The translations under genes and the position numbers were made by a program. Of a stretch of DNA of 64,000 nt, positions 8,151 to 40,699 are shown piece after piece (position 1 is the stretch's first letter; the number at the start of each line of letters is the position of its first letter). The DNA is from Eutreptiella sp. 'Long Island Sound 2002' (lineage: Eukaryota; Protista; Euglenida): the NCBI GenBank assembly GCA_964036045.1, contig OZ038379.1, forward strand, positions 32,736,001 through 32,800,000, given 5' to 3'. Under the pieces are notes generated by a model, which ran no database searches, was not told the DNA's origin, and saw only the letters and a program-made list of their open reading frames with translations.

Positions 8151-8619
8151 GCCTCATTGATTTCTCCTCAACATGGGGACGCTCGAAACGGCAGGGGTGG
8201 TGTAGCCTTCTCTATTTCTCCCTACCATGGGTCCTTCACGAATGCACGGGCAGTTCTATGGTTATGAAGCAGGAAAGCACCGAAACTGGGGCTCGGGTAG
8301 TTACCGACATACAAAACTTTGCATTGCGTGCACGTCACATCCCCACTTCAAGGGGGATGGGTTATTGGGAGCAGAAACTCAATATAGTGGCTCATGAGAA
8401 GGGCATGACATGGGCCCACCTTCCCGGACATTGATTTGGTCCATTGCTGTGCCCCCCCCCCTCCCCCGCCCCCAGGGGCCAAGTGCACAGAGTCTCCCAT
8501 GCTTGATGGATAAATGGCGTCCTCAGATACTCTACCCTGCGCCCCCGCCAGCTCCTAACAGCTACACCTGCGCCCTCCAGCGCCACTTCTGATCCGGCCC
8601 ATGCCTCTCACTTGGGGGT

Positions 8620-8900
8620 GTTTCGGCACAGCGCAGGCACAGCGTGCGCACACCGCCGATTATTACGTTGTTTATCCCGGGAACACCCCTGAAATTCAAA
8701 TTCAAAACAGCATGGGGTGCAGAATTCAGGACCCTGGGACCCGTGGCAAGCATCACACTAAAACAAAAATCCCTGATGTACCAGCACGGGGGATGTACGG
8801 TGCAGAATTCAGGACCTTGGGATCTGTGGCTACCGGTGGTGGAAAACGGCCGACTTTTCGCACAGCACGGGCACAGCGCACAGTGCGCCCCCTTTTGCGG
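8620..8900. repeat. Dispersed about 290-bp MITE/SINE-like family, copy 1
   Basis: Near-identical to 14535-14820 (gcacagcg..attacgttgtttatcccgggaacacccctgaaa..ggaccctgggacc..ggaccttgggatc..gtggaaaac..gcacagcgcac.gtgcgccccct). Related pieces at 61730-61800 and 62175-62240. Confidence 0.8.
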
Positions 8901-9256
8901 TGCGCCCCTGCCCATGCGGCTACCTCAGACACTTCAAATCTATGGCTTTCTCACGGCTACGCCCGGCACACACGTCACACACACGGCTTCTTGCACAGAC
9001 ATACCGGACAAACGTGGCTACCCCACACCCCTCGTCCATCCGCTACCTCACGCACACATGCACACACACACATGCACGCACAGACACGGCTATTCCTCAC
9101 ACATGTCTCTCGCACACCGACCTCACGCTGTCCAAAATTGCTGAACACACTGTTGTGCCCTCCATGGCCCTTGCCCCATGTGCACTGCCCTCATACGGCG
9201 GCAAGCCGTGCCTGCACCCTCTCGCTTTCCCCTTTTGCGGCTTTCCGTGCACAGAC

Positions 9257-12200: not shown

Positions 12201-12946
12201 AACATTCAAGCAGGTCAAAGCAAGCACATACCCACGCTGCCTTGGGGTGGGCCAAGCTCGTTTGAGCTTCGTTGGTTGCACTTCAGTGAGAATGATAAAT
12301 ATTTTTTTGTGTTCCGGTGCAGCATGAGTTCAAAGGTATGGACAAATGGGAGTGCACTTACGCAAACGCCTAGCAGCATGTACAGCTGCTGTGGCCACAG
12401 CTACTGGCTTTGCGCAGATTATGCCTGTTCTAGTGGGTTGCACTTTGGTGAGAATAATTATTTGGGATTAGTTGGTATGTCAACAGCCTCATGACACCGG
12501 GTTGCTGGATTACCGCAGACAATGGGAAGGAACTGAAGGGCCACAGTGCGTTCCTTGCCGGAGAAAATTGGCATATGTACCTGAGAGCACTTGGGCATCA
12601 ACCCCCCGTCCCCCCAGGACAACAGCATGAAAAGCAGGCTGAGTATACGCAACCTGCGTATGCAGATACCCTGCAGACAGACAATGCACAGTGTAGAGCG
12701 CCTCCTCGTCCGCCCCCAACAAGATGCCATACCGAGTGCTGGTGCTGTACCATGATCAGAGTCCTGGCTTTCGGAAGGCAATGCTTGCTCATTGGCAATC
12801 TGGCTGGCAGTAGCAGGGAGGACGATACCAGTCACTGGGGCTGCGCGGAGGGACCACACCACAGCACAGAGCAATACCCCAATGACTGCAATGAAGACCA
12901 CCAGGAATCGAAACTTGCTGAATGCATGCTTCCGCACAGCCCTCAT
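9257..12946 (-). CDS. Type II membrane protein with EGF-like domain and beta-propeller glycoside-hydrolase-like (GH43-type clan) domain; exons 12946-12733, 10775-10608, 9420-9257; 3' exons not found
   Basis: Exon 1: MRAVRKHAFSKFRFLVVFIAVIGVLLCAVVW (N-terminal TM). Exon 2: CNLAGKCLAGGQCSCLQGWTGPTCGVLDL. Exon 3: TTWGAS..GEWYLFASRMVHGCGILTWSSNSEIVQATAPDVMGPY. GT-AG junctions with matching phases (1,1,0): G|gtatgg, tgcag|GT, G|gtgtgg, tgcag|GG, AAG|gtctgt. Confidence 0.8.
10946..11360. repeat. MITE-like block of short TGTACC(A)-containing tandem units with an inverted end
   Basis: About 22-bp units ttgtaccataaaac at 11025-11105, diverged units to 11275, and inverted ggtacattt/ggtattc units at 11320-11360. 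Lies in intron 1 of the GH-like gene. Confidence 0.6.
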
Positions 12947-14534
12947 GAGCAGCCGGAAGATCTGATGGCTAATGCACACATGGTGGCTGCAGCAAGGGAA
13001 GCACATGTGACACAAACCACGCTGCCTCACCCACACAAACACGGCAGTGGCCTATGGTAATTGCAGTAGTACTAGAGGACATCCCTCCATTGATAAAAGT
13101 GTCAAAATGTGCCTCGTTTCAGCCCCCTAGCTGAACAAGTGCAACAGGGGAACATCTTGAGAACTTGAGGAGACAAGAGTTGCGATGATTGTATGCAATA
13201 TGTGGTGCTTACCATTGGGGGGGGGGCGACCCCTCTGTTTCTATATCTCTTGGGGACACCGGGTTTCATGCCAACACGGAGCGTTTTCAGGGGTTGGTGC
13301 CTTTGTTGCCTCATTTGCGCCTGCTGAGTGTCCCAAAGCGGAGGGGTATGTGGGGCATATTCGGAAAGCCCTTGAAAAGGGCTATTTGGAACACCCAGGT
13401 CTGCATGCTGTACTGACGACATGTTTGAGATTTTCGTCCCTTTTGGACAGTGTGTGTGCTGCCTGCTGCCTCTTTTTGTCAACAGGCAGCTACTATGTCT
13501 GTATACAAATTCACACAACGTGCTGTTGCTTCCCCCGATGCACCACAACAACCTTTGGTGCGCAAAAGGGCTCGCTCTGGGGGTGCAGAGTGGGTGCGTA
13601 TGACTCATTGTCGTGCCAAGTAGGTCGAGAAGCCTCGTACAGCCGGTTCACAGCAACCTGCATGCTCTCATGAGGAACACCAGATCCTGTCCACCACAGA
13701 GGCCGCTGCTTTTGCAGCCCAGTTTTGGGATCGTAAAGAACACCCCAGCAAGGCTTCCCAGCAAGGCCAGAGTACGTGGTTGGTAAGGGCTTTAATGAGA
13801 CAGCCTCCCTCTGATTGGAGAGCTGTACAGGTGCTCCACAAGGGCAGGGCACCTATTCATCCATACAGATGGCTGCTGTTCTGAATTTCTGAACTGGGCG
13901 TTTTGTAATTTCGTCATGTGCGGCGTTTCATTTACAGCTCTGTGCTCAAAACTGTGACCACCTACCCCCCAACCCCCACCCCAAACATTTTTGAAACGAC
14001 CTTTTCTCACAGATTTCAAAAAGCATACACATGCCCCCGCCTAGGTGACAACATTTTGGTGCATTGAACCAAAACTTGAAATATCCCTGAAAAATTGCAA
14101 ATTCGCTCCGTGTTGGCAGGAACCACATGTCCCCGAGAGAGATGCCCCCCCCCCCCCCCTCCTCCCTGCCCTGCGGGCCCAGTTAGTTACAAAGGGTGGC
14201 CATGTTTGACCCGCAATAATGGTGGCGCTGAAGGTGGTCTCTTTGGCCAAAATCTAAACCCATTCAGTAGGAAGTTTTGTTTGTAAAAAACAGATTTCAG
14301 CAGCAGTAGTGTGAGGAGGGCCTATAATCCTGTCTGGTTTCAGAAGTTAAGCAGCAGTTGGTCCATTTAGTACTCAGGTTGAACCCCTTTGACCACTTTT
14401 TGGGGATGATTTGTCCAAATCCACACCCATTTGGAAATCATTGGTACACAACAATGAACCAACAAGTTGCTGACTGCCCCTTTGAAGCGGGGGGGGGGGG
14501 GGGGTGCCCCAACATATATACCTTAGGGGGCATT

Positions 14535-14820
14535 TTTCGCACAGCGCGGGCACAGCGTGTGCACAGCACCAATCATTACGTTGTTTATCCCGGGAACACC
14601 CCTGAAAGCTACCCACCTGCAGAAGGATGTATGATCAATTCAAAACAGCATGGGGTACAGACTTCAGGACCCTGGGACCCTTGGCAAGCATCAGACTAAA
14701 AAAAAATCCCTAGTGTACCAGCAGGGGGGGTGTAGGGTGCAGAATTCGGGACCTTGGGATCCGTCTGTGGCTACCAGTGGTGGAAAACACAGCGCGGGCA
14801 CAGCGCACGGTGCGCCCCCT
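14535..14820. repeat. Dispersed about 290-bp family, copy 2
   Basis: Colinear match to 8620-8900. Confidence 0.8.
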
Positions 14821-15289
14821 TAAAAACAACCGTCATGGGGTGCAGGAGAGCATGATACCTCGCGTACAATGTCACTCAACTTCTAAGCCACCAAACAAGG
14901 CTGGGGCTGCTGAGGCCTTGTGGCGAAGAGGCGTTTTCCCGTTGCTTAGATTTACTGACAACTCCCATTATACAACCATATAGCCAAAAGCCACCACCCA
15001 CCTACGATACAGACTCTCAAGGCACCATTGTGCAGCTGTTTCACTTTTCCCTAAGACGGCAGCAATTTTCCAAATATCTCTGATTCTGCCTCGTCCTCAA
15101 GGGGAGCTTTTCAAGCAAGCACTTTATTTGCTGTGACCACTTTTGTGTATATGCCGAAGAAAAAAACCAATTTCTGATGTAACCTCCTCTTGTTGTATTT
15201 GTGTATACGGGAAAGGGGAAAAAAACAAAGTTCAGCACCACAGTAAAACCCCTTACCTTGGAATGTCATTCTGCTAACCAAAATGCAAT

Positions 15290-15690
15290 CTGGGCCACTT
15301 TAGATTGTGTCCCCTGCTGTGAAGCGTTAGGGACCCCCCATACGGCAGGGGTTATGTAACCAATCCGCCCTTTTGTGGGCCATTGCTGACTGTGTTCCCC
15401 GCTGTGAAGCGTTGGGGACCCCCCATACGGCAAGGGTTATGTAGCCAATCCGTCCACTTGTGGGCCACCACTGACTGTGTCCCCCGTTGTGAAGCGTTGG
15501 GAACCCCAGACAGCACGGGTTATGTAGCCAATCTGCCCACTTATGGGCCACTACTGACTGTGTCCCGCGCTTTGAAGCGTTGGGGACCCCCCATACGGCA
15601 CGAGGTACGTAGCCAGGCCGCCCAATTGTGGGCCACCACTAACTTTGTCCCCTGCTCTGAAGCGTTGGGGACCCCCCCATACGGCAGGGC
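15290..15690. repeat. About 80-85-bp tandem array (GAAGCGTTGGGGACCCCCCATACGGC..TTATGTAGCCAAT)
   Basis: Five units at about 15321, 15406, 15491, 15581 and 15660. The reverse complement resembles the 5090/54000 family. Confidence 0.85.
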
Positions 15691-16560
15691 CAATTTGTTG
15701 GGTTTCTGAATTTCGCCGATTTGTTTTCCCGATTCGTTGGATTTCTCTGATTTTGCCGATTTGTTTTGCCGACTTGTTGGGGCTTGTGGGATTCCAAGAC
15801 ACTTGATTTGGAGGTGTCAACGTAAGATCTGCATCATTTACTTTGGGACACGACACTGGATAATACCTTTTCTTTCTATATTGGCTCTTCAGATTGGCAC
15901 CATGAAGTGTTTTTACTGCTCACAGAAAGACTCATCTCTAGTCCCCTGGGATTCATTGTCCCCCAAGGTTCCTAGTGCCCTGGATCTCAGTCCCAGGCCC
16001 CAAACACACGTTCCTTTTGGTTGTTCAGTAGTTGGAGTCATGTGGAAACCCAAAATAGGTGGGTTTGTTGCAGACCCTGTGGCAGACCATGTGGCAGCAG
16101 TAGAAGACTCTGCAACAGTCGCTGAAGGCTCCACAACCCCAAATTCCATTGACTTTGCCGAAAAATTGGTCTGCCGATTTGTTCGCCGATTTGTTGGGAT
16201 TTCTTCGCCGATTTTGGGGGGGGGGGGGCGGGGGGTTGAATGCAAGCTTCCACGGAGCCCCTGGCGGAACAAATCGGCGAGGTCAGCCAAATTTGGCCGC
16301 CAATTTGGGGGGGGGGGGGGGGGCTGGCGCATTGTGCAACACATTTTAAGGAGGAATCATTTTATACCCGCCACTGAATAGTAACCGCCCTTGAATAGTC
16401 ACCGGGAGGCTGTGAAGCAATGGATACTAAGCTACAGATATAGTCCCTATGACACAGGGGAAACGGCCACAGCTCAGTTAGTGTTTGTTCCAAACCAATG
16501 CTGAATGTTGCCTTGAGTTAGCCAGACCCGGCTATTGAATGTTGCATAGGCTGGTTTGGG

Positions 16561-17300
16561 TCAGCTCTGCCCCCTCCCCAAGAACCTGGTCAGCAACCTG
16601 TTGCATGCATACCCGGGCACTGTCGTTTCACTGGCGACTTGCCTACACTCAGTCACTGTACAGATCCCGCGCAGTTTCGGGCTCCTGACATTCAGACATT
16701 TCCTCCAGACCCAGGTCCTGCCAAATGTCCTGCACTTCACCCTGACCTGATGCAAGCTCTTTGACGCCCCCTGCTGGGCACACTGGTCTGCCCCCTCATT
16801 CCCCTGCACGCCTACATGCAACGGGACCCACTGTACCAACACACTATCCCCCAACAGTTGCAAGCTACACCAGAGGCGTTGCCACAGATCCCGATGCGCC
16901 AGCGGCCCCTGCAACCCCCACCCATCCATGGCGCTCCCACTTCTCACTCTTGCCTGTTAACCTTGCATATATGGTTTCCGAATCTGTGACAACATGCAGC
17001 TTGATACATAGTGGTTTGTCCTCTGCTGCAGTCAGTATACCGTACAGCTATGCCCTGCCAATTGTTTGTTTCTCTGCTGGCGGGACCGGTGAGCGCACAT
17101 TGAACCCTGTCCTGCTGCCCTGATGCTGCCCAGACTGGACCAAACGCCCTGTGGACCACGTCCGCAGCAAAACCCATAAACTTGCAAAAGCCCACTGCAT
17201 GCACCGGGGACCGCACCACAACACATGCCACTTGCGCATACCCACGGACAGTTTACTCCACAAAGCATGTCGTATAAAATCCTTTGCCCTACCCGTTAAC
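16561..17300 (-). mobile_element. RNase H remnant of a non-LTR retrotransposon
   Basis: HRDLWQRLWCSLQLLGDSVLVQWVPLHVGVQGNEGADQCAQQGA, preceded by a degenerate ETNN motif. Confidence 0.75.
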
Positions 17301-20300
17301 CACAGCTCATACTTCTGCACTCTGCCTCTCTAGTGGGGGCGCCAGCGGCCGCAAAAAATGAAGGAAAGCTCCACAAGACGTTGTGCCCCAATATGGGTGG
17401 CAGATCCGGAACAGGTTGTTGCTCCAACCACCTGCAGCCAATAACCCCCGCCCCCCCTCCCCTAGGTGGGCGGCAGTGGCACTTGCGTTTTCTGCTTATG
17501 CCCTTGAACATGCACCAAGTGGTTCATTCCGCAGCACACCAGAAGCAGTGAGCAATAAGTGTGTGATTGCTCGTTCCTGAAAAAGGCATTGCGCCACACA
17601 GGCATAATATGCAATGCGATGCAGAGGCAGGGCTGGTGTCCCACGTCGCAACTGAGAATAGCACTTACAAGCCCTTTGCAGCACTGAGCGAACTCCCCGG
17701 ACCACTGCTAGTTGACAAAAAAGGCAGTACTTATGAATAGCAACCGGGAGTGGGGGGGGGGGGGAGGGGGCGAGGGAAGCGTAGGTTGGATATTGGGTTT
17801 CTCATGTGTGTTTGCTGGTACTGTTGTCAATTTCCAATATTTAGGCAGTGGTGTTCTTGCCAAGATTTGGGGCCCTCAGAGTGCAGTGCTTACTACCGGT
17901 CCATCACAGAGCGCTCTGGTGACACATGACTGTGCCCCTATAGCGCGGATGTCTCTCCTCCGGGTTGGAGCACCTTATCAAACCTGTAGCCAAGCCTGCT
18001 CCCAAAGCTGCCAAACCTCATGCCAAACCCTTAACCAAGAGTGGAACCAAAACTTGCTGCCCAGGTGGCAGCCCAACCTGCAGCCAGACCTTTGCTTATC
18101 AAGGGGGGGGGGTCATTTTGGGACTGCCTGAGGACCGGGTAACCCACCCACCCACCCAAGCTGACCACACACACCTCTTACCCCCCCGAAGGGGGGGGGG
18201 GTCTCTCATCTCTCATCCCATATCCATTGCATGTTAAAATATTCAAAAAATTGAACCCCAGGCTGGCCCTGGCAGTTGGAATATGGGCATTGGTTCAAAT
18301 CCCAGCGATCCAATTTTTTTATACCACGAAACACTGCCCTCTCCCCAAAGAGAAGTCTCAACAATGGGAAACACAACAAATCAGCAACACAAATCACACC
18401 CAGCCAGCCAGCCACCCACCCACCGAAACCCTCCCCCTCCACTGGGGGGGAGTGGGCACTTTGGGCCAAATTGCCCAAAACCAAACTAACCCACCCACCC
18501 ACAGGCCACAACCCCCCCCCCCCCCCCCCTGGGGGTCGGTTGGGACCCACCTTAAGCAAAGGTGTGCCTGCAGCCAAGCTTGCAGCGAGAGAGCCCATTG
18601 CAGTGGCCCTTTTTGAGCACGGGCAGCTCATCAAAGTCAAATACTCGCACCCAAAAGTGGCACATAGAGCCTGTCTCTTAGTATAGCTGAACATGCACCC
18701 CAAACAAGCAGTTTCCGGGTCTTCTTGTGGTTCATATGCTCTCGTGTTTGCATGTTTTGCTTCGTGTCACGTGTCCTTTGTGTTCCCTCGGGCAAGTGAG
18801 GGAAGTGTCACTTTGGGGATGTTCCCCCAGGTGTATGGGGACACCATGGCGCACAGACAGTCACTATTCAAGGGGGGGATGTTGCACGCAACGTCGACAA
18901 CGGGTACCCCCCTTGAAATAGGCACCCCCACTTTCCCCTGCCCGTGGCCCTTCCAACCTTGCTTGCGATATCGCATGCACGTTTGGTAGGTGCACGCCAT
19001 CCAAATTTTCAAGCCGAATTTCCAAGCAGTTTTCCCCACGGCCGTCCTTAAGGGGGGCGGGGGGGGGGGGAGCACCAACAAAAACAAGTGTTCACGGGGA
19101 CACCTTTTTTTTATGTCAAACGGGCCAACTTTGCCAAGAGCCGTGAAGGCAGTGTAGGAGCTAAGTACAAATTTTGACAGAGCCATGGTGTGCATATGGA
19201 ATTCAGCTCTGGGCTGGTTCCCCATGATTTCCTGTAGAAGATGGGGTGGTAACGTAAGTTGGATTTTCCACTCCGTCGGATCCCAGTGCGCCCTTTGTCG
19301 TTTGGTGAAGGGTTGTATTGGGACTTCCCATAAGGTGGCATCCCAATCTTCCTATACCCTTTTGCGTATGAAGTATAGGGACTGTTTGGTCGTCTTAGTG
19401 GTGTGCATGTACAAGGCTGTGAGCATTGTTGCACGCCCCAGTTCCTGAAATGTTTTGCGGCACAAATCCCATGGACCATGCCCCAAATCAAGGATACAAT
19501 TGCGAGAAGTGCAAAGTGACACGGGCTACCAAATCGGCCTTGGCTCATGGCACCGTACGTTTCCCAAATGTCATCAAAATTGCTTGTCTACGCAGATAAA
19601 CATGTTCAGTGGGGCAGTGTCTTGGCCGACACTACCCTGAAAGAACTCCGGCACGACTTTGGCGTAACGCATCCAATCCGTATGGTGGGCACCCGAGCAG
19701 TAGATTCGAAACGCGTTACCACCCGGGGTCTGCGATATGGGCAGGACCTTGCCAAAGGGGCACTGCCACTTCTTACTCCGGTTAGACACATGGCCTATGT
19801 GAACCTCCCGGACTGTGCGCCGATTCTTGTTACCCCCCTCTTCTCCACTCATGTGGGAGACCTCACAAATCTTTCCAAATGTCACAAATGGCTCGTTATC
19901 TTCTGCTGACATGCGCGCATTTGCCCCCCGGTTGGCCCCCATTAGCGTCGCGTCCGGGTGGTGGGATTGCCACATGCACACAGCACAAACCCACTCCCAA
20001 AAAGAACGAACATTTTGCACAAACAAACAATGTATGAGCAAGACACACATTGTGGACGGCGCCCTTAGCGGCCCCTTTTTGGGCACTATGCTCTCAAAAA
20101 GGAAGTGCACTGCCCAAATGGGGGGACCTCTAGAGTGTGGCACAGGTGCAGCTGCAGCTCTGAGCTCCCAAGCTCAGGGAGAGTTACCCTGTTTAATGAA
20201 CCGTCCACCAAGACCTCCAATGCCGCAATCACTCAAGGGCGATTAACTGTGTGCTCGGTGCCACTACACTACCATCTATTTATTCAACCCCAACTCTGGT

Positions 20301-29439: not shown

Positions 29440-30472
29440 CACCAACCCCCCCCCCCCCCCCTGGTGCGCCTCGTTAGCGCGCAAACCCGCCCCCCGGTAT
29501 GCACCGCCTTGTATGTGGACCTCCCTCAGCTTCGGCTCGCGTCGCTCCGTACGGGGGACATCCCTGCACCCCCCTTAAATAACAAGACTCCTGCAGTGGC
29601 TACAGACCGCCTTTTGTATGCACCACCTTGTGTGTGCACCACCTTGTATCTCCACCGCGTCGTGTATGCACCGCCTTGTATGTGGACTACGACTCGCTTC
29701 GCTGGATGCGGGGGACACCCCTGCACCCCGCTTAAATAACAACACTGCGGTGGCTAAAACCCACCTTTTATGTGCACCGCCTTGTGTATGCACCGTCTTG
29801 TACGTGGACTACGGCTCGCTTCGCTCGATGCGGGAAACATCCCCGCACCCCCTCTAAAGAACAAGACTTTTGCAATGGCTACAGACCGCCTTTTGTGTGC
29901 ACCGCCTTGTCTGTGCAAAGCCTTGTATGTGCACCGCCTTGTATGTGGACTACGGCTCCCTTCGCTTGATGACGGGGACACAACCCGCATACCCCTTAAA
30001 TAACAAGACTCCTGCGGTGGCTACAGACCGCCTTTTGTGTGCACCGCCTTGTATGTGCACCGCCTTGTGCATGCACCGTCTTGTATGTGGACTACGGCTC
30101 GCTTTGTTCGATGCGAGAGACATCCCCACACCGCCTCTAAAGGACAAGACTTTTGCAATGGCTCCAGACCGGCTTTTTTGTGCACCGCCTTGTCTGTGGA
30201 ACGCCTTGTATGTGCACCGCCTTGTATGTGGACTACGGCTCCCTTCGCTTGATGACGGGGACACAACCCGCATACCCCTTAAATAACAAGACTCCTGCGG
30301 TGGCTACAGACCGCCTTTTGTGTGCACCGCCTTGTATGTGCACCGCCTTGTGTATGCACCGTCTTGTATGTGGACTACGGCTCGCTTCGCTCGGTGCGGG
30401 GGACATCCCCGCACCCCCCTTAAATAAGAAGCCTCCTGCGGTGGCCACAAACAACCATTTGTGTGCACAACC
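29440..30472. repeat. Minisatellite array (GCACCGCCTTGTATGT core; 283-bp higher-order period), left host flank of the LINE
   Basis: gcaatggct.cagacc at 29872 and 30155. The same motifs resume at 39816-40095 and 53451-53530. Confidence 0.85.
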
Positions 30473-31455
30473 GTTTTGAATTGTACAGCCACTTTAATGT
30501 CCGGACAGGGAGACAGCCCTCAATCAGAGTGAAGTGTAAATACAAACGTGCTTGGCTCTCCCTAGCACTATGTGAGGGGTGTAGCCATGGAGGAACCTCG
30601 GAACTCGCCCTGTCGTGGATGGGTAGGGTTGAAGAGAGCGAGGTTGCCTTGGCACGCGCCCGTTTGGGTGCCTGGTTGGTTGCATAGAGAAGTGGAGGCG
30701 TGACAGGAGAGAATCAGGATCAAGGGGAGGAACGGAGGCGCTGTGATGTGAGACGTGATGGTGTGGATAAAATCAGCCAAGGCTTACTGAATTGTTGGAA
30801 CAAGTCGGTAACTACTGTGAAGTGTGCAGGCAGACATAGAGAAGGATCTCGGGGGGGACCGGTGTAAAATGCATATTGGTCTATGTGAACAATTATTTTC
30901 GAAGGACGACAGTCGAGTAGTATTCTGGGGGGGGGGGGATCTGGATCCAGTTCTGACAACACTGATAACGCTTGTGGTGGCCTTACCGTAGTAATGGCGC
31001 GGTCGCCGTCTCCAAACTCGACCGGTGAGAGATGTGTGTACGTCGCGGAAGGAAGGAGCTCGCAGAGATGACCAAGTGGTTGGTAGTCGGAACCGCTGTG
31101 TGCAATGGATCAGGGCCTCACAAACTGACTTCAGTGTTCGAAGGGATTGGAAAGGGTCTCCCAGGGTGCATTATCAGGTTGTCCGCATGCAACGCCAAGA
31201 CAAACGCCGATTGCGGGTGGGCTTGGTGCACTGGAGTGCTGCAGACATTTAGACGAGGTACCACAGGATTTCAGGGGACGGCTCGCGGGGTTCAGGTACC
31301 CAGAACAAGCAATAGTAGTATCCAAGACATTCAGGTTCATACCACCAGTGGATGCCGAGGTACCACATGATAGCAATGGATAGGGAAAAGGCTGAGAAGT
31401 GGGATGAGTGACTGAAGGGGTAGGGGCCTCGTTCGTTCGGCTAGGGTTCAATCTG

Positions 31456-34400
31456 TTATTGGCCGAGATGAAACCGCTTGCTGGGGGGGGGGGGGGGTAG
31501 GGCAAGCGATGGGGGGGGGGGCGGAAAAGATTCCGTCGCTGATCTCGCTGACGGGGGCGGCTTGGCTGGAGGTAGAGGGGGGACTGGAGCTCGGAAGAAG
31601 TCAGTAATCCGTCGGTTGGAGCTGTCAGCGCCGGGGGGTTGGGGGGGTGCCACTGGTTTAGGGGCGTAAGTGTCACTTCGACTTTTGCGTGGTGGGGGGT
31701 CTTCAGTGTCCCGGTCGCGTTTCGTGGGTGGTCGTTTGGGATGCATGGGCCTTTTGCTTTTGTGGGTGCGTGGCTTTTTTGAGGGGGGGGATTGGACTGA
31801 GTCTGGCAGGTGGTCCGGGGGCAAGGGATAGTGGTATTCGCTGTGCGCCCGTGGGGTGTGTGACGTGCTGTAGATGCTGTTTGGTTTGCCCCAGGTGTTG
31901 GGACCTTGGGGGGGGGGGGGGCGCGGGAGGGGGGGGGGGGGATCTTCGGCTAGCCAAGTGAGTGCTTTGGACAGAGCGTCTTTCAACTTTCGCTGGCGCT
32001 GGGGGAGTGCATTTTTAAAAGACAAGACGCGCCGGGGTTTGGTTTCGCCTGTTGTGGGTGTAATCATGGCTTCGTACAGGGTGGAGGGCACCAGGAGCTT
32101 GACGAAGTTTCGTTTGTCTCCTGGGTGGGAGCACTGGGCCCACCAGATGCTTGCTACTTGGCTGAAAGGCGGAGGCCACGCATGTATGAAGCTTTGCACA
32201 ATGTGGTCAGCGCTAGGGCAGTGGGATAGGAAGGAGGCTGCATCGAGGGGGTGTGGTTGTGAGCATTTGTGACATATTCGAGGAGTTAGGTCGTTGTGGA
32301 ATGCATAAGTAAGGAAATTCATGTTGCCAGACGACCATTTGAAGGGGAGTCCAGAGAACCACGATGAGTGGTTGTAGAAGAAAAAACTGGACGGCACGTG
32401 AATGTTGTGGTGGTGATGGCGGGGGATGAGGGCCCTCGATACAGAGGTGGTTAGGCGGTGGCAGACAGGCAAGCTACCGGAGGATACAGTTCCCAAGGGG
32501 GGTGGGGGTTGCAACTCAGGGGAGGATGATGAACTATATGCAATCCACTTGGAGAATAGATCACAACATTCATTTCCCTGAAATCCCGCGTGCCCTTTGA
32601 TCCATGCGAATTGCGTTGACACGAATCTTGGCATCTGAGCTTGGAGGGAGGAGTAAGCCTTAACCCATGTGCCATGTGATGAGCGCGATGCCATCACCTA
32701 TGATTGAGTGTTTGCAGTGCGGATTACTTGTTCGTTGTCGCCTAGAATTATGCATTGCATAGGTTGGTTTAGGGAGGACACCCACCGAAGAAGCATAATG
32801 CCAGCCCAGTACTCGGACCCTTCAGAGGAATAATAGGGGGATGGGAGGCAAAGAACCAGAACCGTACCGTTGGGGTTGTAGATGGTGGCAGCAGAGCCGA
32901 AACCCCCTTGCTACGCCGAACCATCCAGGTATACCCAGGTTGTTTCGGAGGAGGCCTCTTGCAGGAGTTGGGCTGCTCAGTTGCAGTTCCACGCTTTGAG
33001 GTCATCAGCTCGGAGAGAGTGCGGGGGTAGGCCGTGGATTTGGTACAAATATCCCATTGGTGAGGCTTGGAGCAGGACCCCGTTCAAGGGGGGGGGGGGG
33101 TGTTGTCACGTAGGGGGGGGCAGGCGTTGTAGGAAGGGATTAAGAGATGGTGGTTCCCGAGGATGTTGGTGGGCGCGGCTATGACTGGGGGGTGGATGGT
33201 GTAGACTTTTTCTGACCCCCGGAGGTTGAAGGTTGTGTCATCCCCCGGGAAGTAGATGGCTGCTTGGTCGCAAGAGGTGTCAGTCACGATGCCTCTGTGG
33301 ATGCCCAGGTCTGTGTTTTGGTGGCGTTGCTTGTTGCCCCACTTGGTAACTCGGTTGCTGGAGTAAGTGGTGAAATGGACATAGGCGTGTTCACATTTTT
33401 GGAGCAGGTGGGGTGGAGTGTTAATTTCAGAGCTTGTGGTGTTGAATCTTACGTGGAGGCTGTGACAGGCATCGCTGATCAGCTTGAGGACCATTGAGTT
33501 TTCCGCGCCAAGTGCTGCTTGCCGAAAAATTTGGTTGGTTTCGTCCGGAGCCTCGTTGTTCAAGTAGCGGATGGCAAAATTGACAGTAGAGATATTGAGG
33601 CAGTGTTGGAAGTGGCGCAAGTCAAGTCCACCATGGGGCCTGGAAGTGTATTTGTCTTTGTTAGACACTAATCTGGAGATGCGGTTGCGTTTTTCTGGAT
33701 CATGGTCAATGGCAATGTTTTTCCAAATGATGTTTTGCAGGGATTTGAGCTGTGATTGATCGAGTGGGTGAGCCATGAGGCGATATTGGAGAGTGGGGAT
33801 TAGCTGGAGGTTCACCAGTCGGATATATTTAGAAAGGGTGAGGTTGAGTGGATGTAAGAAAGTGAAAAAAGACGTGATTTCAGATTTAGCCAGTTCATAT
33901 GTGAGAATGGGGTCGGGATCTGTAAACAGGTAAACACCGAGGTATTTGTATACCTTCCGGGGAGCGAGGGTTTTTGGGTCGATGGTTGATAACCTCTTTC
34001 GAGAAGGTGCAGTGATCGTGGTTTGAGGGGCCTTTCCCATGCTGTGGAGTTCTGCTTTGCTGAGGTTGATGTCTAGACCCCATGCCCGGCCCTTGGAGTC
34101 ATAGAAAGACAGGATCTCTTCAATGCGTTGGGAAGATTCGGAGCGGTACAGCAGGTCATCCACAAACGCATGGCTAGATTCATGTTGTGTGATGGGAGTG
34201 GACAGGTGGTGAGGGACAGCGAATAGTAAAACATTCACGTACAATACGAACAGGATCGGAGATAAGGGACATCCTTGGCGGACGCCTCTGGTTTGCAGGT
34301 GTGATGCACTGGTGTGGCCGTTAACTACAAGGTAGTCCCGTGGAGCTCGGTAGAGCCCAAGGATGAGTCGGATGAGGGGGGAGGGGAGGCGGTAGTGTTC

Positions 34401-36555
34401 CAGGGTCTTAAACAGGGACCCGTGAGGGACACTGTTGAAGACTTTGTTGAAATCTATGTAGAGGCTCTATGAAGCTGGGCAGTTTTGGTATTTGGCCAAT
34501 AGTTGAAAAATGTGATCTGAGCACCGGCGGTTGGGAAGGCCGCCGAACTGAGTTTTGTGGATCAAGCCATAAAACGAGGAAATTTCGTATAGGTGTTTGG
34601 CAGCGTGAGTGGCCACAATTTTGTAAAGCGTGTTAAGGAGGGCGATTGGTCTGTAGTTCACCGGGTCGTGTGTTGGGCCTTTTTTGTAAAGCAAAACCAC
34701 GTTAGCTTCCAACCACGCATCACGCATATCGTTGGTAAGGTGGAGGTCGCAGACAGAGAGCAGAAATCGTTTCACTGGTTCGGGAGAGATATGGAAAAGG
34801 TAACCATTCGTGGAGTCTCGGCCACCTGCCTTCGAAGGTTTGCAGGAGTGCAGGTAGGAAGTGAACCCGTGCCATGAGATTTCCGGCGTAGGGGTGATGG
34901 CTGTGGTGGGGGGGCACTGGGGTGTATGCCGGAGGAGTTCTTCGGCAGTGTTTACACTAGGTTCGTAGTTTAGGGGTCCGCCCAGAGTGAGTAGGGTGTC
35001 AGAAAAAATTTCGGTGAGGCGTTTGGTGTCACTTGTTAATTTGCCTGTGTTTGGGTCTTTCAATGTGGATGTTCGATGCTCCGTTGGGTTTGCCGCTTCG
35101 TTGAGTGTTTTCTTGATGTTGGTTTTTTGGATGAGGCACTTGTGAATCTTTGACCTTTTAGATTTGTTGTAAGTGTCATCCCATTGGTGGATTGCATCAT
35201 TCAATTGTGCCATTCGGGTAGAAAATTGCGGGTGCGTTGGGGGGGGGGGGCATCGTTTAATGCCTGGCGAATGGATTTGATGGCTAGGGAGTCGGGTTTA
35301 ATGCAGGGGGCTGTGGTGTTGTGGTAGTGAGCGCTGAGCTCCCGAATGACCATGGAGGTGTATTTTTGGACCGTAGCAAGGGGGGGTGTTTTTGATGAGA
35401 GGGGTAAATGATTGGCACCACTCAGACATTTCTTGTAGGGCACCGTTGAAAGTGCTGATCTCAGACTTGTTGAGTTTTCTGAAAACGCGTTTGGTAATTG
35501 TAGATGGGTGGAAAGGGGTGGGGGGGATAGAAAGGGTGCACGAGGAGGGATGGTGGTCAGTAGCGCGGTTTTCTGAATGAATGCTTGCTTCCAAGAGGGA
35601 TATCTTCCCTAGTGAGGTCGGGGAAATGAAAATGTAGTCTGGTCTGGACGAGCTGGTGCGGTGTCCTTGTGGATACCTGGTGTACTCCCGTGCCGTAGGG
35701 TTCGCCAGACGGAAGGTGTCGCGTAGTAGGGGTGGGGTGGCCGTGGCTGAGTGTCTGATCCATGGCCAATGATTGTCATTCAGTAACCCCTGGCTGTCCA
35801 AGGCGGGGTTGATCAGACAATTGAAGTCACCCCCCAACAGGAAGTTTGGAAATTGCTTGAGGAGTGGGCGTAAGCTGGTTTCCACTTTCCTTCTCCATAC
35901 CTCGCCCGCAGGCGCGTACACAGAGGCGACTAGGAGAGGTGGTGAACCGGGCAGAGTGAGGAGGGCAGCTGTGATGAGACCATCTTTGTCGGGGTTATCG
36001 CAAGGGGTGACGAACTGGCTCAGGAGGGGTGAGAAGGCTAAACCGGAACCGTGTTCGTGGTGGGGGGATAAGTTTGAGAAAACCACAGCTCGGTGACCTT
36101 TTTGGTTGTAAATGTGAGGCACGAGGGGTTTTTTCCTGAGTTCTTGAAGGAAAACAATGTCGAAGCCTTGTTTGAAATGTTGTAAAAGAAGGGGGGTCGA
36201 AGGTTTCTTTTCTGTATTGTGGGTGATGGCACGGATGGTGTGGATTAGGCTTTTGGGTGATGGCTTCGCCGGAGCGTAGCCTTTTTTCAGTTTCGGATGT
36301 CACCGGAGGGGGGGAGGGGATTCTGGGGTTGGAGGGTGGCTCCATTCGAGAAACATTTGAATTATGTGTTGGACGTACGGAAACAATCGGGGAGGTGTTG
36401 GGCTCAAGGTCGGTCGCCGTGAGGTGTGTGAGGTCTGAGGGTGAGGGAGGGGAAGGGAAAAAAGGCACGGTGTTCATGTGGGACTCCACGAGGGTCGAAG
36501 CGGACGGGGCTGCTATGCCAGCCCCGATGAGCACGTCCTTTAGACTTTTAACCAT
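31456..36555 (-). pseudogene. LINE ORF2: AP endonuclease, reverse transcriptase, RNase H, Cys/His motif, Pro-rich tail
   Basis: APE: IRAITHN..DIVFLQE, ASVYAP, LLGGDFN, RPDYIF, TDHHP. RT: KAGGRD, NYRPIALLN, YIDFNK, GVRQGCPLSP, AFVDDL, YKYLG. RNase H: VYLDGS, GDNEQV, WIKGHAGFQGNECCD. C-terminal CHKCSQPH..SHC. Stop at 34467-34469, further stops near 32700-33000, frameshifts at G/C runs near 36310, 35380, 35240 and 33090. Confidence 0.93.
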
Positions 36556-38617
36556 GGCATTTGCAATGGCGCAAGATCATGGCGTATCGGAGAACTCGTT
36601 GCGTGTATTGGCCATTTCTTTCATCCATGGTAGTTTTGGGAATTGCATGCAAGTATGACCAGCGGGCTTCTCCCCGTAGACATGTGAGCGAACCGGAGCC
36701 CATCCAGTGGGCGTAGTGATGTCCTCCTTTCACATGGCGAAAATGCATGGGGACAGGACATTTGAGGTTCAAGTCTAGCACATATTTGCCCAACGCTTCG
36801 GCGTCCACATGATCTCCTAAGACTGAACCAGGCTCGTAGCGGGCGACAGTCACTTGGTTTGGAGCATCGATAGAAATACTGCGGGAGGCCAATTGAAGCA
36901 GAATTTTTTCAATGTAAGGCTCGAATTCGGGTGGTAGGTCTTCCAACCGTGTGATATCGGTGCCATTAGCTCCCATTCCATAGCCAAAGTGCTTCGGATG
37001 TCGATGCATAGAGGTGTCCCAATTTGGTTGGAGGTGTTCGAACATAGTAATGAGACTGTCTTCTTCCTCAGCAGTGAAGAGAGCTGGAATATAGTCGAGA
37101 CCGTCGGGAACTTTGTTAGAGGCGAAATGCGCAGGGGGCATTTTGTAGGAAACTTCGGGGTTCACTTCGGGCGGAGGATCGTGGTCGACATCGATGGTGT
37201 CGATTTTCTCGGCTTTCTCTTCCGGCGGGGGGTCTTGATCTACATTGATAGCTTCGGCGAAATTTGGATCCTTTCGGAAGTCTGCGGTGGCTTTGTCCTC
37301 AACGTCGTTATTCACTATTGGGCTGTATGGGTTGTGGACGTGTGCTTCGAGTATAGGAGTGAGGAGTTGTTGGTCATCCGTGTCCACGTCGGCCGGAGGG
37401 TGCACCTCTGGCGAAGGCGATGGGTGGTCGTTATTAGGCGGTGATGGACTGGATGTGGTTGGATGGGGAGTGCTTGAGGTTGAATCGGAGTTGTCGGGTG
37501 CCGTATCTCCTGAAGGATGGAAGAGGGGTGGTGAAGGGGAGAAGGCCGTAGAGGTGTTAGCGTGTGATGGTGTCTTAGGCGTGTTGTCTTCCGTGTTCCA
37601 TTGGGATATTTTGTCACGCGGGGTCGGAGGTGGCGCGTCCAATTTTTCTTGGAGTTCCATGAGCTGGGTGACAAAGGCGCCGGCACCAAGGGTTCCTCCA
37701 CATTGGAAAACAGCGATAAGGTCGTTGGGGTGTTCTTCGTCGGTGTGCGGTTTGAGGATTTTTTCCCGAGAGACATGGTCCGGTTCGAGGCAGCGTGCAG
37801 ATATTCCTCGGTAACTGAAGCCATGTGCCAATAGAGCAGAGTCCCTCTTTTGGTATTTGAGTTGGTATAGAGTGGCTACGTTAGACGACGTGATCACCTT
37901 GTCAATTGAGTAGAAGGGCCCTAGCAAACCCATAACTATTTTGACCGAATGAAGAGACTCAGTCATCGGTGCGGCAACTTCAACTAAGCATGGGTCACTC
38001 GGCGTGCGGACTGGATCTTTAGGAAGAGGCCATTTGTCTTGAGGAAGAGCCGTGGACGCGAGGGAGGCTGATTGAGGTTTTTCATCCCGAAAGGGAACCA
38101 TGGCTCCCGCCGGTCCTTTGAATAACAAGAATCCATCGTCACGGAACAACCTTGTTGCTAGAGTTTGAAGCGGGGTTTTTTGAGGTTCGCATGGCACCGC
38201 CGAGTAGTCTAGGGTGACCAGCAAACTCGTTGAGTTTTTTAAGAGAGCTCCTTCGTACATGCAGCAGCGAGGGTGGGCCGCAAAGTTCCGCCTTGTGATA
38301 GACCAAATATCACCCGCTTTGTCGTCGGGGTTGCGAGATTTGCAATCACGAGAGGGTACAACGTGGAAGGTTCGTAGACTTTGGAGATCCTCAATACGCA
38401 TGATGAAAATGTCTCCTTTGGCAAACACCGGGGAGTTGACCACCGCATTGCGCAAGTAGGTGTTGAAGGGTGGTGGGAGATCCCAATCATACCTCACAAA
38501 ACCTTCAAGAGGAGAGCGGAAATTGCGGATTCCCCCTAGTGGGTAGAAAGCATTGGATGAGTTGATGCTAGCCGCGTCACTCAAACCGCCGAAGCCTCGA
38601 TTGAAACCCGTTTGCAT
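36548..38617 (-). CDS. LINE ORF1 (689 aa): possible RRM-like region, Pro/acidic linker, C-terminal AlkB-family 2OG-Fe(II) dioxygenase (about 36560-37110)
   Basis: YIPALFTAEEEDSL, HFGY, PNQVTVARYEPGSVLGDHVD (HxD), LRGEARWSYLHAI (second His), RYAMILRH (Rx5R). Open frame. Confidence 0.88.
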   Translation of the reverse strand: MQTGFNRGFGGLSDAASINSSNAFYPLGGIRNFRSPLEGFVRYDWDLPPPFNTYLRNAVVNSPVFAKGDIFIMRIEDLQSLRTFHVVPSRDCKSRNPDDKAGDIWSITRRNFAAHPRCCMYEGALLKNSTSLLVTLDYSAVPCEPQKTPLQTLATRLFRDDGFLLFKGPAGAMVPFRDEKPQSASLASTALPQDKWPLPKDPVRTPSDPCLVEVAAPMTESLHSVKIVMGLLGPFYSIDKVITSSNVATLYQLKYQKRDSALLAHGFSYRGISARCLEPDHVSREKILKPHTDEEHPNDLIAVFQCGGTLGAGAFVTQLMELQEKLDAPPPTPRDKISQWNTEDNTPKTPSHANTSTAFSPSPPLFHPSGDTAPDNSDSTSSTPHPTTSSPSPPNNDHPSPSPEVHPPADVDTDDQQLLTPILEAHVHNPYSPIVNNDVEDKATADFRKDPNFAEAINVDQDPPPEEKAEKIDTIDVDHDPPPEVNPEVSYKMPPAHFASNKVPDGLDYIPALFTAEEEDSLITMFEHLQPNWDTSMHRHPKHFGYGMGANGTDITRLEDLPPEFEPYIEKILLQLASRSISIDAPNQVTVARYEPGSVLGDHVDAEALGKYVLDLNLKCPVPMHFRHVKGGHHYAHWMGSGSLTCLRGEARWSYLHAIPKTTMDERNGQYTQRVLRYAMILRHCKCHG

Positions 38618-39543
38618 GATTCTATTGTCCGTGAGCGAGAAGTCTCCGTGAATTTGGGGTTTAGAACTTTGGATTCTTCATAGAAAGCGCGTAGGGTCTT
38701 GATGGAGACGTCAATTCGAACCTTAGAGTTGACCGTGTTGGGTGGTTTGGTGATGCGGGCATGTTGGAAGGCTTCGAAGAGAGATGGTTCGTAGAGGTTG
38801 ACATCAAAGAATTGAATTTCATCCGTTTTGCTTTTACGGCTATCAAGCCATAAGGCCACGACGGGGAGAGATTGTTCGTTTGTTTCGACGAAGTTGGGTG
38901 TGTTGTTCCTTACCAAAGCAAATTGGTTTTTGGTCTCTTTGAAAACGTGGATCTCGGCGATGAAATCTTTTATTTGAACGAGAGAACCATTCATTGTGGG
39001 GAGATAGGACTTGGATGTGACCTCCCTATCGTAGCTCGTAGTGATGAACCATCCACGGGTTGCAGTGCTCGGTGAAGCAAAGCGGCTCTTTAAGAATTCT
39101 ACGTAGTGTTTGGAAGTTTTCACCACTGGTGGCAACCCCGTTTTGTCCATGGGAGGTGCGAGGTAGAACGCGACCTTGGGCATGTACTCGTCTTTGTGCA
39201 AGAACAAGTCGTGGGCGGGCGATAGGTAGGTGTGTTGGTTTCGTTTGTTGATATCTTTGTTGATGAAGGCGTTGGTGAAGTCGGTGCCTCTTAGATCTCA
39301 GTCAAACGGGTGTCTATTGTAGATGAATTGGCGTATGTTGGAGTGTGCAATGAAGAGTTTTGAGTCAAACATGCGAGTACCTTCTTCGTAGGTGCCGAAT
39401 TTGACGTAGTCATTTTCCGAGGACGTTTTTGGTGTAGCTAGGAGTTGAGCGGCGCCATAGGTGAGTCCTTTTGGGATTGGAAAAGGGGACGGCGGCGGGA
39501 TGGTTGGGACTTTGTTTTTTGAGCCGAGACCAAAGAACGACAT
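38581..39543 (-). pseudogene. LINE ORF0, about 320 codons, unknown function, one in-frame TGA at 39298-39300
   Basis: ORFs 39298-39858 and 38581-39207 are in the same frame. The first ATG downstream of the SL gives MSFFGLGSK at 39543. Confidence 0.65.
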
Positions 39544-39786
39544 GTTGTGCGCTGAACGATGGATGTCCGGAGTTCGGGAATGGGATGCCAAAGCGTAGGA
39601 AGTGACGGTAAACACGGAGTTTGTCCAATATAGAAATAGCAGAAATGACGGTAATTTCGAAGGAAATGACCGTGAATTCGAAAGGACTTGGAAATCGGCC
39701 CAGAACTTGAACAGCCCAGGATTTTTGTAAATCACCGAATAGCCTGGACTATTGGTGGATCCATCAAAGGAATTCTGAGGGTCAAT

Positions 39787-39812
39787 CAAAAAAAAATGGA
39801 CACTCAGAAAGT
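39787..39812 (-). other. Retroposed spliced-leader exon sequence
   Basis: Minus strand ACTTTCTGAGTGTCCATTTTTTTTTG versus the Euglena SL as I recall it, ACTTTCTGAGTGTCTATTTTTTTTCG: 24/26, both mismatches C/T. It is not followed by a GT donor, so it is not an SL RNA gene. Confidence 0.88.
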
Positions 39813-40699
39813 GATTTTGTGTGCACAACCTTGGATGTGCACCGCCTTGAGTATGCACGGCCTTGTATGTGGACTGCGCGCCTCGTCAGCGCCAGCCCCC
39901 TCCCGCTCTGTGCACCTCGTTAGCGCCGAACCGCCCCCAGCATGCCTCGTTCGCAAACCCCCCCGTCGCGCGTCTCGTTAGCGCCAACCCCCCCCCCCCC
40001 CAGCCGTGCGCCTGGTTACCGCCAAATTCCCCCCCCCATGCGCCTCGTTCGCCCCAACCCCTCCCCCCCACCCGTGCGCCTCGTTAGCGCCAAACTCTTA
40101 GGCGGCTCTAAGTGAGTGGTCGGCCGAAACCCAAGTGAAAAATCACGGTTTTGAAAAGGGCCTTGTGGGGCATTGCATTTTGAAATGGTGGCTAAAACCC
40201 CTGCTTGGGGGAAGAATGTATTTTCAGACCTACGGGTCACAGCAAAATTTTACTATTCCACATCCACGCTTCACAGTGCAGTGAGGAAAACCCACCGTTG
40301 AACGCCCCCCCTCAGTGACATACCTGTGTGGTGTTTACAAACCACCATTCTGTATTGACGGCTTTATGATCAATGAAACCATCATCTATTGTGGAGCGCC
40401 TGTTTGGCACCACTCCAAACACTGGTGGTGTGTGGTTGCTTAGCAACCTATTAATCACCTAGAAATGAAAAATGCAGGGTACCGAGCAAACATAGGCAAG
40501 CAGTGGACAGTGCATAGTACGCTCATATAGGTAGGTATGCTCAAGCAGTTTTGTATTGGTGAACAGATAGGGTGCGGTAACAAAGACAATGAACTTTGTC
40601 AATGAGTACATATTGATGAACACGTAGTCAAACCTCACACTTGTTTGTACTTACTGAGAAATAACATGTAGCATTGTAAAAATGCAAATTCGCTCAACA

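Follow-up and report, generated by a model that had tools for sequence, protein, structure and literature searches.

Genomic copies of an AlkB-bearing LINE that begin with a spliced leader in Eutreptiella

Element and insertion site

The window analysed here is a stretch of 64,000 nucleotides (nt) of Eutreptiella sp. 'Long Island Sound 2002' (contig OZ038379.1, positions 32,736,001 to 32,800,000). Its minus strand carries, at 39815..30473, a non-LTR (long terminal repeat) retrotransposon of 9.34 kb that starts with a complete spliced leader (SL) exon and encodes an AlkB-type dioxygenase domain at the C-terminus of its first open reading frame (ORF1). Together with its target-site duplications (TSDs) the unit comprises 9.37 kb (39830-30458). 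A search of the window yielded no further copies of the element. The boundaries, the SL and the untranslated regions (UTRs) were assigned as follows.

39816..39830, minus strand: 5' TSD GGTTGTGCACACAAA, exact repeat of 30458-30472
39813..39815, minus strand: three extra nucleotides ATC between TSD and SL; C fixed, the two nucleotides before it variable
39787..39812, minus strand: complete 26-nt SL exon ACTTTCTGAGTGTCCATTTTTTTTTG with two private mismatches; ATTGACCCTCAGAATTC follows
39773..39809, minus strand: predicted hairpin of SL nt 4-14 with the first 14 nt of the element body (GACCCTCAGAA); -12.4 kcal/mol, z -4.4
39544..39786, minus strand: 5' UTR, from the SL junction to the first ATG of the consensus ORF1
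30473..31455, minus strand: 3' UTR with the terminus ...ATTCAAAAC; A-tail nearly absent in the window copy, 7-12 A elsewhere
30458..30472, minus strand: 3' TSD, exact 15-bp match to the 5' copy

The insertion host is a satellite with a period of 142 bp, a higher-order period of 283 bp and internal 16-bp subrepeats. Its array covers 29638-30468 and resumes at 39820-39871. When the flanks were joined via one copy of the 15-bp repeat, a regular 142-bp satellite unit was regained; the repeat is therefore a true TSD and no by-product of the satellite. The exact repeat 39830-39816 / 30472-30458 had been taken as a TSD in a preliminary description of the locus, and this was confirmed. TSDs of variable length, an A-rich 3' end and the absence of terminal repeats identify the element as a long interspersed nuclear element (LINE).

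Further copies of the family

A protein search with the AlkB-bearing ORF returned nine clusters, all from one ENA assembly, with P0001 representing 106 sequences; judged by these matches, the family would comprise roughly a hundred copies. Six loci (L001 to L006) were fetched. They are colinear with the window element, are 86-96% identical to it and form two subfamilies. Three of the six copies reach the 3' end, L006 falls short of it by ~860 nt, and L001 and L004 end within ORF2. The flanking DNA is different in all six. TSDs of about 9-13 bp (L002), 13 bp (L003) and 16 bp (L005) were found, and these three copies have A-tails of 7-12 nt. The preliminary description had advised testing other full-length copies for SL and AlkB as a safeguard against a misassembly or a one-off chimera. 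Both features were present in all six, which have independent flanks, and their own TSDs where they are complete.

We regard it as very improbable that the architecture is an artefact, be it a misassembly, a nest of unrelated insertions or a host AlkB gene that lies beside a LINE by chance. An artefact would be in keeping with an assembly that appears to be based on long reads, with the homopolymer position of every indel of the window copy, and with the nested transposable elements (TEs) that are common at the loci. Against it, the 9.3 kb are colinear in seven copies from different contigs, AlkB lies in frame within the consensus ORF1, TSDs bracket the whole unit, and the junctions are covered by independent short-read contigs. 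The order ORF1-AlkB also recurs in four further families, in three of which a LINE ORF2 follows.

The spliced leader at the 5' end

The SL-like site at 39812-39787 is unique in the 64-kb window (0 expected by chance) and differs at two positions from the SL published for Euglena gracilis (ACTTTCTGAGTGTCTATTTTTTTTCG; PMC6242988). It follows directly on ATC and thus begins 3 nt inside the 5' end, as first described. The match to the published SL is 26/26 in L002 and L003, and L001, L004, L005 and L006 have one private change each. All seven family copies begin with NNC, the complete SL and ATTGACC, NNC being ATC in the window and CAC, ATC, CTC, GTC, CAC and ATC in the other six. The SL changes among copies are all private and amount to 3.3%, compared with 4.4% (the neutral rate) in the 5' UTR.

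The C directly 5' of the first published SL nucleotide was found in 10/10 SL-led insertions (window 39813; L001:6239, L002:8468, L003:8133, L004:8152, L005:8806, L006:9731, L007:14677, L009:430, L012:7699), with 0-2 variable nucleotides between it and the TSD. It could either mark a start of the SL RNA upstream of the published 26-mer, perhaps with modified bases, or be added by the reverse transcriptase (RT) at the cap. Variation at the two positions preceding the C far exceeds that of the remaining element and is independent of subfamily, as fresh additions at each insertion would give.

Short-read contigs follow the element as far as 39813/39814, beyond which they split into many different sequences (agreement 0.47-0.53), which is expected from many copies ending at the SL. 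In each of the four runs the summed contig depth is ~10x as high over 39652-39835 as elsewhere in the element; presumably the SL (in SL RNA genes and further SL-led copies), and possibly also the initial 130 nt, are common to other repeats. Short-read depth is also very high across 39836-40000. A G/C-rich 36-bp tandem repeat with runs of at least 10 G/C adjoins the element at 39958-40093.

All seven family copies bear the signature of a retrocopy, i.e. a whole SL exon, without the SL intron, inside the TSD. Because this exon is fused to the element exactly at the SL 3' end, and this at dispersed sites, the sequences point to a trans-spliced RNA as the template. A complete SL exon without SL intron was also found at L009:431, L012:7700 and L007:14678. 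The first two lie upstream of related AlkB-bearing regions described below. The third belongs to another SL-led sequence (L007:14678-15748; AGC, SL, GCATGAATAAG...), which contains a 330-aa ORF without Pfam match and is unrelated to the LINE. SL-tagged retrocopies seem to be common in the Eutreptiella genome.

The LINEs SLACS, CZAR, CRE and NeSL-1 are associated with the SL in a different way, since they insert into SL RNA genes via a restriction-like endonuclease. A site-specific LINE of this kind, borrowing the start of the SL RNA gene, would equally place SL sequence at the 5' junction, but its probability is practically nil here. The flanks are 142-bp satellite in the window and unrelated sequences in the other copies, the SL exon, inside the TSD, borders on element sequence instead of the SL intron, and the endonuclease is of the apurinic/apyrimidinic (APE) type. 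The whole exon without intron, its position inside the TSD and the dispersal of the copies exclude an SL-gene-specific LINE and, on the same evidence, template switching onto SL RNA.

The hairpin predicted across the SL junction of the window copy was also obtained in four other copies (z -2.0 to -3.1 against shuffles). In the precursor this stretch could pair with the SL RNA; it might hold the SL ribonucleoprotein (RNP) at the splice site or provide a stem that caps the RNA. In Rfam searches of the whole window (gathering threshold) and of the 5' 600 nt (permissive threshold), neither a ribozyme family nor an SL RNA family was matched, which leaves a self-cleaving ribozyme of a described family at the 5' end unsupported.

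Coding capacity and decay of the window copy

The coding features of the window copy are listed below, with E-values of Pfam profile matches.

36548..39543, minus strand: ORF1 (subfamily consensus about 1000 aa), interrupted in the window copy by a TGA stop (39300-39298) and by the loss of 1 nt near 38656
36551..37180, minus strand: AlkB-type 2-oxoglutarate (2OG)/Fe(II) dioxygenase at the ORF1 C-terminus; PF13532, E 6e-11
36811-36803 (end of GDHVD, 36817-36803), 36655-36638 and 36589-36569, minus strand: AlkB motifs HVD, H (within the second stretch) and Rx5R
31456..36555, minus strand: ORF2, APE-RT-RNase H-CCHC, overlapping ORF1 at its start
35607..36167, minus strand: APE-type endonuclease; PF03372, E 1.5e-5 in the window, 4.8e-9 in L003
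33930..34679, minus strand: RT; PF00078, E 4e-22 in the window, 1.2e-30 in L003
32551..32640, minus strand: C-terminal part of RNase H (PF00075 positions 103-136); N-terminal part frame-shifted in the window copy
32203..32274, minus strand: Cys/His motif (CHKC...H...C) near the ORF2 C-terminus, read from the translation, without profile match

In subfamily A (window, L002, L003) the majority consensus contains a single open ORF1 of 998 codons from the first ATG, composed of an N-terminal part, a Pro/Ser-rich linker and the C-terminal AlkB domain. The consensus ORF2 begins a few nucleotides upstream of the ORF1 stop codon and is open for ~1180 codons through APE and RT. Three ORFs had initially been counted; the first two of these are one ORF1, split by a private TGA and a 1-nt deletion, so that the element has two ORFs in all.

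ORF2 of the window copy is disrupted by one inserted nucleotide (36294), by in-frame stop codons (35300-35298, 34469-34467 and 33086-33084) and by a frame break at ~33100-32700 ahead of RNase H. According to the short-read contigs, most other copies have G at 39300 (CGA), an extra base at 38652 and no base at 36294. Since most other copies differ there, the defects at 39300, ~38656 and 36294 are private to the window copy. All of its indels sit in homopolymers, so that errors of assembly may account for some of them. Although full length, the window copy is dead owing to nonsense mutations and 1-nt indels; the designation 'full-length' given to it earlier is appropriate for its extent from the 5' to the 3' end and not for its reading frames.

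RNase H and the Cys/His motif lie in another frame in both subfamily consensuses. The frame relation differs between the two, the break occurs at a C run, and in related families RT and RNase H are encoded in one frame. On these grounds a third ORF or a programmed frameshift for RNase H is unproven; ORF2 was read provisionally as one APE-RT-RNase H-CCHC gene.

The full RNase H domain (PF00075 positions 4-136) is present in L003 and L006. The succession APE-RT-RNase H proposed at the outset was borne out in the window by PF03372, PF00078 and the C-terminal part of RNase H. The closest solved RT structures are those of human L1 ORF2p (1.5e-19) and then R2, and the element RT also resembles L1-like RTs of other eukaryotes, a relation of similarity only. 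A sequence search of the PDB with the APE domain gave no match. An APE domain N-terminal to a LINE-type RT assigns the element to the APE-type LINEs.

The N-terminal 600 aa of ORF1 gave no Pfam match even at E 5, their best Atlas neighbour (score 0.34) was unconvincing, and a single-sequence AlphaFold model of the N-terminal part (pLDDT 28) was uninformative. In the linker, ~100 nt at 37156-37259 (DPPPE repeats) are duplicated in subfamily A relative to subfamily B, and contig joints are located there.

The AlkB domain

The window copy has the catalytic motifs GDHVD, YLHAIP and RYAMILR, i.e. the iron triad and the 2OG-binding Rx5R of AlkB-type dioxygenases; the presence of AlkB motifs had been recognised from the start. 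The family consensus and most copies retain HxD/E, H and Rx5R, and the distant family C reads HTE/H/RLSVIFR. Decayed single copies are short of one residue: L005 reads DYVD, and L007 is without the aspartate.

In a PDB sequence search with the AlkB domain, ALKBH8 (4e-10) was the sole significant match. An AlphaFold model computed with 60 diverse homologues reached a pLDDT of 92.2 and a pTM of 0.88. Foldseek searches with this model gave ALKBH6/ALKBH8 at 1e-13 and, in Swiss-Prot, ALKBH8 at 6e-16. The Foldseek probability was 1.00 for ALKBH6, ALKBH8, Ofd2, NMAD-1 and ALKBH5, with template modelling (TM) scores of 0.65-0.80, as is typical of the AlkB-type double-stranded beta-helix. In the structural ranking ALKBH6, ALKBH8, Schizosaccharomyces pombe Ofd2 and NMAD-1 stand ahead of ALKBH5, ALKBH3/2 and Escherichia coli AlkB. 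Membership in the erasers of N6-methyladenosine (m6A) of the ALKBH5/FTO type was rejected, as ALKBH8 and ALKBH6 rank above ALKBH5 by fold and ALKBH8 alone is significant by sequence. By model and sequence the domain is classified as an AlkB-family enzyme of the ALKBH8/6-like group, a placement from which the substrate is not readable.

The ratio of non-synonymous to synonymous substitution rates (dN/dS) was computed between the two subfamily consensuses, which removes most of the decay after insertion. It was 0.048 for the N-terminal part of ORF1, 0.32 for the linker, 0.147 for AlkB and 0.139 for APE-RT. Between the consensuses AlkB has 20.5 synonymous and 11.5 non-synonymous changes. By this measure AlkB is under the same purifying selection as the RT during the diversification of the family, and qualifies as a selected, working part of the element.

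As a side result, the JGI metagenome protein P0098 (1227 aa) combines a glycosyltransferase family 90 domain with a C-terminal AlkB-type domain.

Diverged families with ORF1-AlkB

An exhaustive search with the AlkB domain gave 1084 relatives, the closest of which outside the family lie in LINE-like contexts in the same assembly. At least four further families keep ORF1-AlkB (L007, L008/L009, L010, L012), with ORF1 25-47% identical. In L007, ORF1 is 47% identical overall (up to 78% in the best-conserved stretch) and ORF2 50-60%. The values are 26-34% and about 32% for L008/L009, and 25-30% and 40% for L010. In these three families a LINE ORF2 is located downstream of ORF1-AlkB. ORF1 of L012 is 29% identical, and no LINE ORF2 was found within 10 kb downstream.

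An SL is present upstream of ORF1-AlkB in two of the diverged families (L009:431, L012:7700), in which ORF1 is about 27-34% identical. L009:430-17694 is a 17.3-kb unit with C and the SL at its start and CAAAAA at its end. The 12-bp sequence GGATTAGAGACT recurs exactly on both sides of the unit (0.0025 expected by chance). The diverged AlkB LINE occupies the 3' half of the unit (8509-17657). From the SL to the ORF1-like region, over ~8 kb, there are unassigned ORFs only, several of them on the opposite strand. In L012:7700-10606 an ORF1-like region with AlkB lies about 1 kb downstream of the SL, and a Ty3-like RT/RNase H was noted at 14387-17023. A search for TSDs at L012 gave nothing convincing; the locus may represent a LINE that was interrupted, or another type of ORF1-AlkB carrier. 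The 5' ends of L007, L008 and L010 are without SL and, these copies being 5'-truncated or interrupted, are uninformative in this respect.

In a quick maximum-likelihood tree the eight element-borne AlkB domains formed one group against 57 other homologues (SH-aLRT 95). Such a pattern would result if AlkB had been captured once, long ago, into the ORF1 of an SL-using LINE lineage. A large LINE family at a similar RT distance (L011:7314-14579; RT cluster of 261 members) has APE-RT-RNase H with a different ORF1 and no AlkB, and would be a useful outgroup for dating the capture.

Origin of the spliced leader and role of AlkB

Taken together, the locus is probably best read as a full-length dead copy of an APE-type LINE which obtained its SL from host trans-splicing and in which AlkB was a selected, working part. 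The life cycle proposed on this basis would run as follows. SL trans-splicing by the euglenid host would give the element RNA its cap and 5' end, in place of a promoter-defined start, and the RNA would be translated into ORF1p-AlkB and ORF2p. ORF1p-AlkB would coat or bind the element RNA, and AlkB would oxidatively remove or convert a base modification on this RNA or on the RNA/cDNA intermediate. Thereby methylated bases that block the RT might be cleared, or a methylation-based mark of the host escaped. ORF2p would nick the target, and target-primed reverse transcription would proceed to the SL end. Every full-length insertion would hence start with the SL.

The preliminary description had already assumed expression through host trans-splicing. 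This stands in so far as the SL junction of all seven copies points to a trans-spliced template; it has to be weighed against an SL that was acquired once and passed on as DNA. For the cycle proposed above we infer trans-splicing in every generation. The UTRs of the families are unalignable and their proteins only ~30% identical, yet the host SL is kept with only private changes at the neutral rate, which would point to fresh SL addition at each round. The subfamily consensuses show 0 differences over the 26 SL nt where 1.7 would be expected, a test that is underpowered for distinguishing a fresh from an inherited SL.

It is fairly unlikely that the SL was instead captured once or a few times and has since been inherited as DNA, transcription now starting at the SL or 1 nt before it from an internal or SL-proximal promoter, without trans-splicing. 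Such inheritance would agree with the CG at the SL end, which leaves SL-led copies without an AG acceptor at the junction, and with a junction that is identical in all seven copies while an AG 12 nt downstream is used by none. The fixed C could then be a templated start, and the 0 versus 1.7 consensus differences in the SL would be only weakly unexpected. Euglenozoan LINEs with an internal promoter in the first 77 nt, bound by transcription factors of SL genes, have been published (PMC1874656, PMC8190864). However, families at ~30% protein identity keep the exact host SL, for which inheritance would need very strong selection on 26 nt. The unrelated retrocopy L007:14678 has the same start of C and SL, which assigns the C to the SL or the cap and not to the element, and the two nucleotides before the C vary regardless of subfamily.

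Several points weigh against the preferred reading, in which trans-splicing supplies the SL and AlkB is a working part. The terminal CG of the SL deprives genomic SL-led copies of an AG acceptor at the junction, so that the re-addition of the SL at each round has yet to be accounted for; among the copies examined, none that lacked the SL and had an acceptor, as a source copy would, was found. The sequencing runs containing the element behave like DNA assemblies; they support the SL boundary at the family level and gave no transcripts, and the protein search contained no transcriptome-derived protein matching ORF1. With regard to ORF1p-AlkB, no RNA-binding domain was recognised in the N-terminal part of ORF1 by Pfam, neighbour and model searches. 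The dN/dS values derive from subfamily consensuses of 3-4 copies each, and the AlkB tree from a quick search with long branches. Finally, demethylation of the element's own RNA by AlkB would be a guess, as model and sequence place the domain nearest to ALKBH8/ALKBH6 and not to ALKBH5/FTO or AlkB/ALKBH2/3.

As AlkB is fused to ORF1 and under purifying selection, it very probably travels in the RNP; residence there is what we infer from these two features. This part of the earlier proposal, that the element brings its own demethylase into the RNP, can be retained, and the term 'demethylase' cannot, given the proximity to ALKBH8/ALKBH6. ALKBH8 hydroxylates the wobble uridine of tRNA (5-methoxycarbonylmethyluridine, mcm5U), and the chemistry of ALKBH6 is unknown. 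AlkB treatment clears bases that block the RT in tRNA sequencing. Oxidative removal of a base modification on the element RNA would be the most likely role of the domain, at no better than an even chance.

It is somewhat unlikely that AlkB acts elsewhere than on the element RNA, for instance on DNA (N6-methyladenine, 6mA, at or near the integration site or in the new copy), on tRNA for a tuning of translation, or on protein. The nearest relatives, the tRNA mcm5U hydroxylase ALKBH8 together with ALKBH6, would fit such substrates, and the 6mA-DNA demethylase NMAD-1 is also a close fold match. In E. gracilis, promoter 6mA, heavy 5-methylcytosine and retrotransposon-captured DNA methyltransferases were reported (bioRxiv 10.64898/2026.05.21.726589). 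The fusion to ORF1 and not to the DNA-acting ORF2, and the lack of a partner RNA recognition motif (RRM) or methyltransferase domain such as ALKBH8 has, speak against these substrates without being decisive. The same applies to the finding that the only tested TE-borne AlkB acts on m6A in single-stranded RNA (PMC9289625).

A more far-reaching reading, which we hold to be quite unlikely, is that of a euglenid LINE clade without a promoter of its own that would depend on SL trans-splicing. The nucleotides behind the junction, complementary to SL nt 4-14, may help in recruiting the SL RNP. ORF1-AlkB would be functionally linked to this way of life and would strip base methylations, near the SL or elsewhere on the RNA, which might halt the RT or expose the RNA to the host, so that the SL is copied in full at each insertion.

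The feature is wider and better supported than the window alone could show. It would be the first LINE lineage known to have an AlkB-type enzyme, kept under selection across deeply diverged families. As such it offers a natural test of whether modification of RNA or DNA bases limits target-primed reverse transcription or marks retroelements for the host, a question that was so far argued from m6A work on mammalian L1 and from one orchid Gypsy element. SL-led copies, in turn, would be a genomic record of retrotransposon RNA passing through SL trans-splicing. They bear on how the LINE 5' end is defined without a conventional promoter in Euglenozoa, with the SL as a marker of full-length insertion.

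Comparison with known systems

A literature search, incomplete in its coverage, yielded no description of a LINE with AlkB or of genomic LINE copies that start with an SL. An AlkB domain in an LTR retrotransposon (PMC9289625) and SL tags on TE transcripts (PMC12220107) and on retrogenes (PMC12014239) have been published.

The only TE-borne AlkB found in the literature searched is that of a Ty3/Gypsy element of the orchid Phalaenopsis. Its product, paALKBH5-like, demethylates m6A in single-stranded RNA in vitro, and erasure of a host mark was proposed (PMC9289625). Both systems are retrotransposons with a fixed AlkB-family domain. The orchid element, however, is an LTR element with AlkB in a separate extra ORF, acquired recently from plant ALKBH5/9B/10B (PMC9289625), whereas in the Eutreptiella LINE the domain is ALKBH8/6-like, fused to ORF1 and common to families that are ~30% identical. 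Retrotransposons of E. gracilis have captured DNA methyltransferases; AlkB is unmentioned there (bioRxiv 10.64898/2026.05.21.726589).

SL-bearing TE transcripts occur in Hydra, where about 30% of the TE Iso-Seq reads have the SL (PMC12220107). The use of host SL trans-splicing by TE transcripts is the common point; the Hydra data concern the RNA level only, and SL-started genomic copies are unreported there (PMC12220107). In dinoflagellates, SL-tagged retrogenes are known whose DNA-encoded 5' SL was taken as proof of a trans-spliced mRNA template (PMC12014239, PMC5585692). These are host genes copied in trans, and the dinoflagellate SL ends in AG, so that relics can be re-spliced and SLs stacked. 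In Eutreptiella the tagged RNA would be the retrotransposon's own, and the SL ends in CG.

L1Tc/ingi elements resemble the Eutreptiella family as Euglenozoan LINEs that solve the 5'-end problem within the first tens of nucleotides. Their Pr77 is bound by promoter factors of the SL RNA gene, the transcripts are unspliced, and a ribozyme like that of hepatitis delta virus is present (PMC1874656, PMC8190864, PMC3185411). In the Eutreptiella element no ribozyme family was matched, and the first 26 nt are the SL itself.

With L1/I/ingi-like APE LINEs with RNase H, the element shares two ORFs, the order APE-RT-RNase H-Cys/His, variable TSDs, A-tails and 5'-truncated copies. It differs from them by an ORF1 of ~1000 aa without recognisable coiled-coil, RRM or zinc knuckle and with a C-terminal AlkB, and by a 5' end that is the host SL instead of the start of a promoter-bearing 5' UTR. 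Compared with SLACS/CZAR/CRE and NeSL-1, the family is dispersed and of the APE type. Plant RNA viruses are comparable as selfish RNA-based replicons with an AlkB of their own; it lies within the replicase polyprotein, belongs to a different AlkB subgroup and may clean the RNA of methyl lesions.

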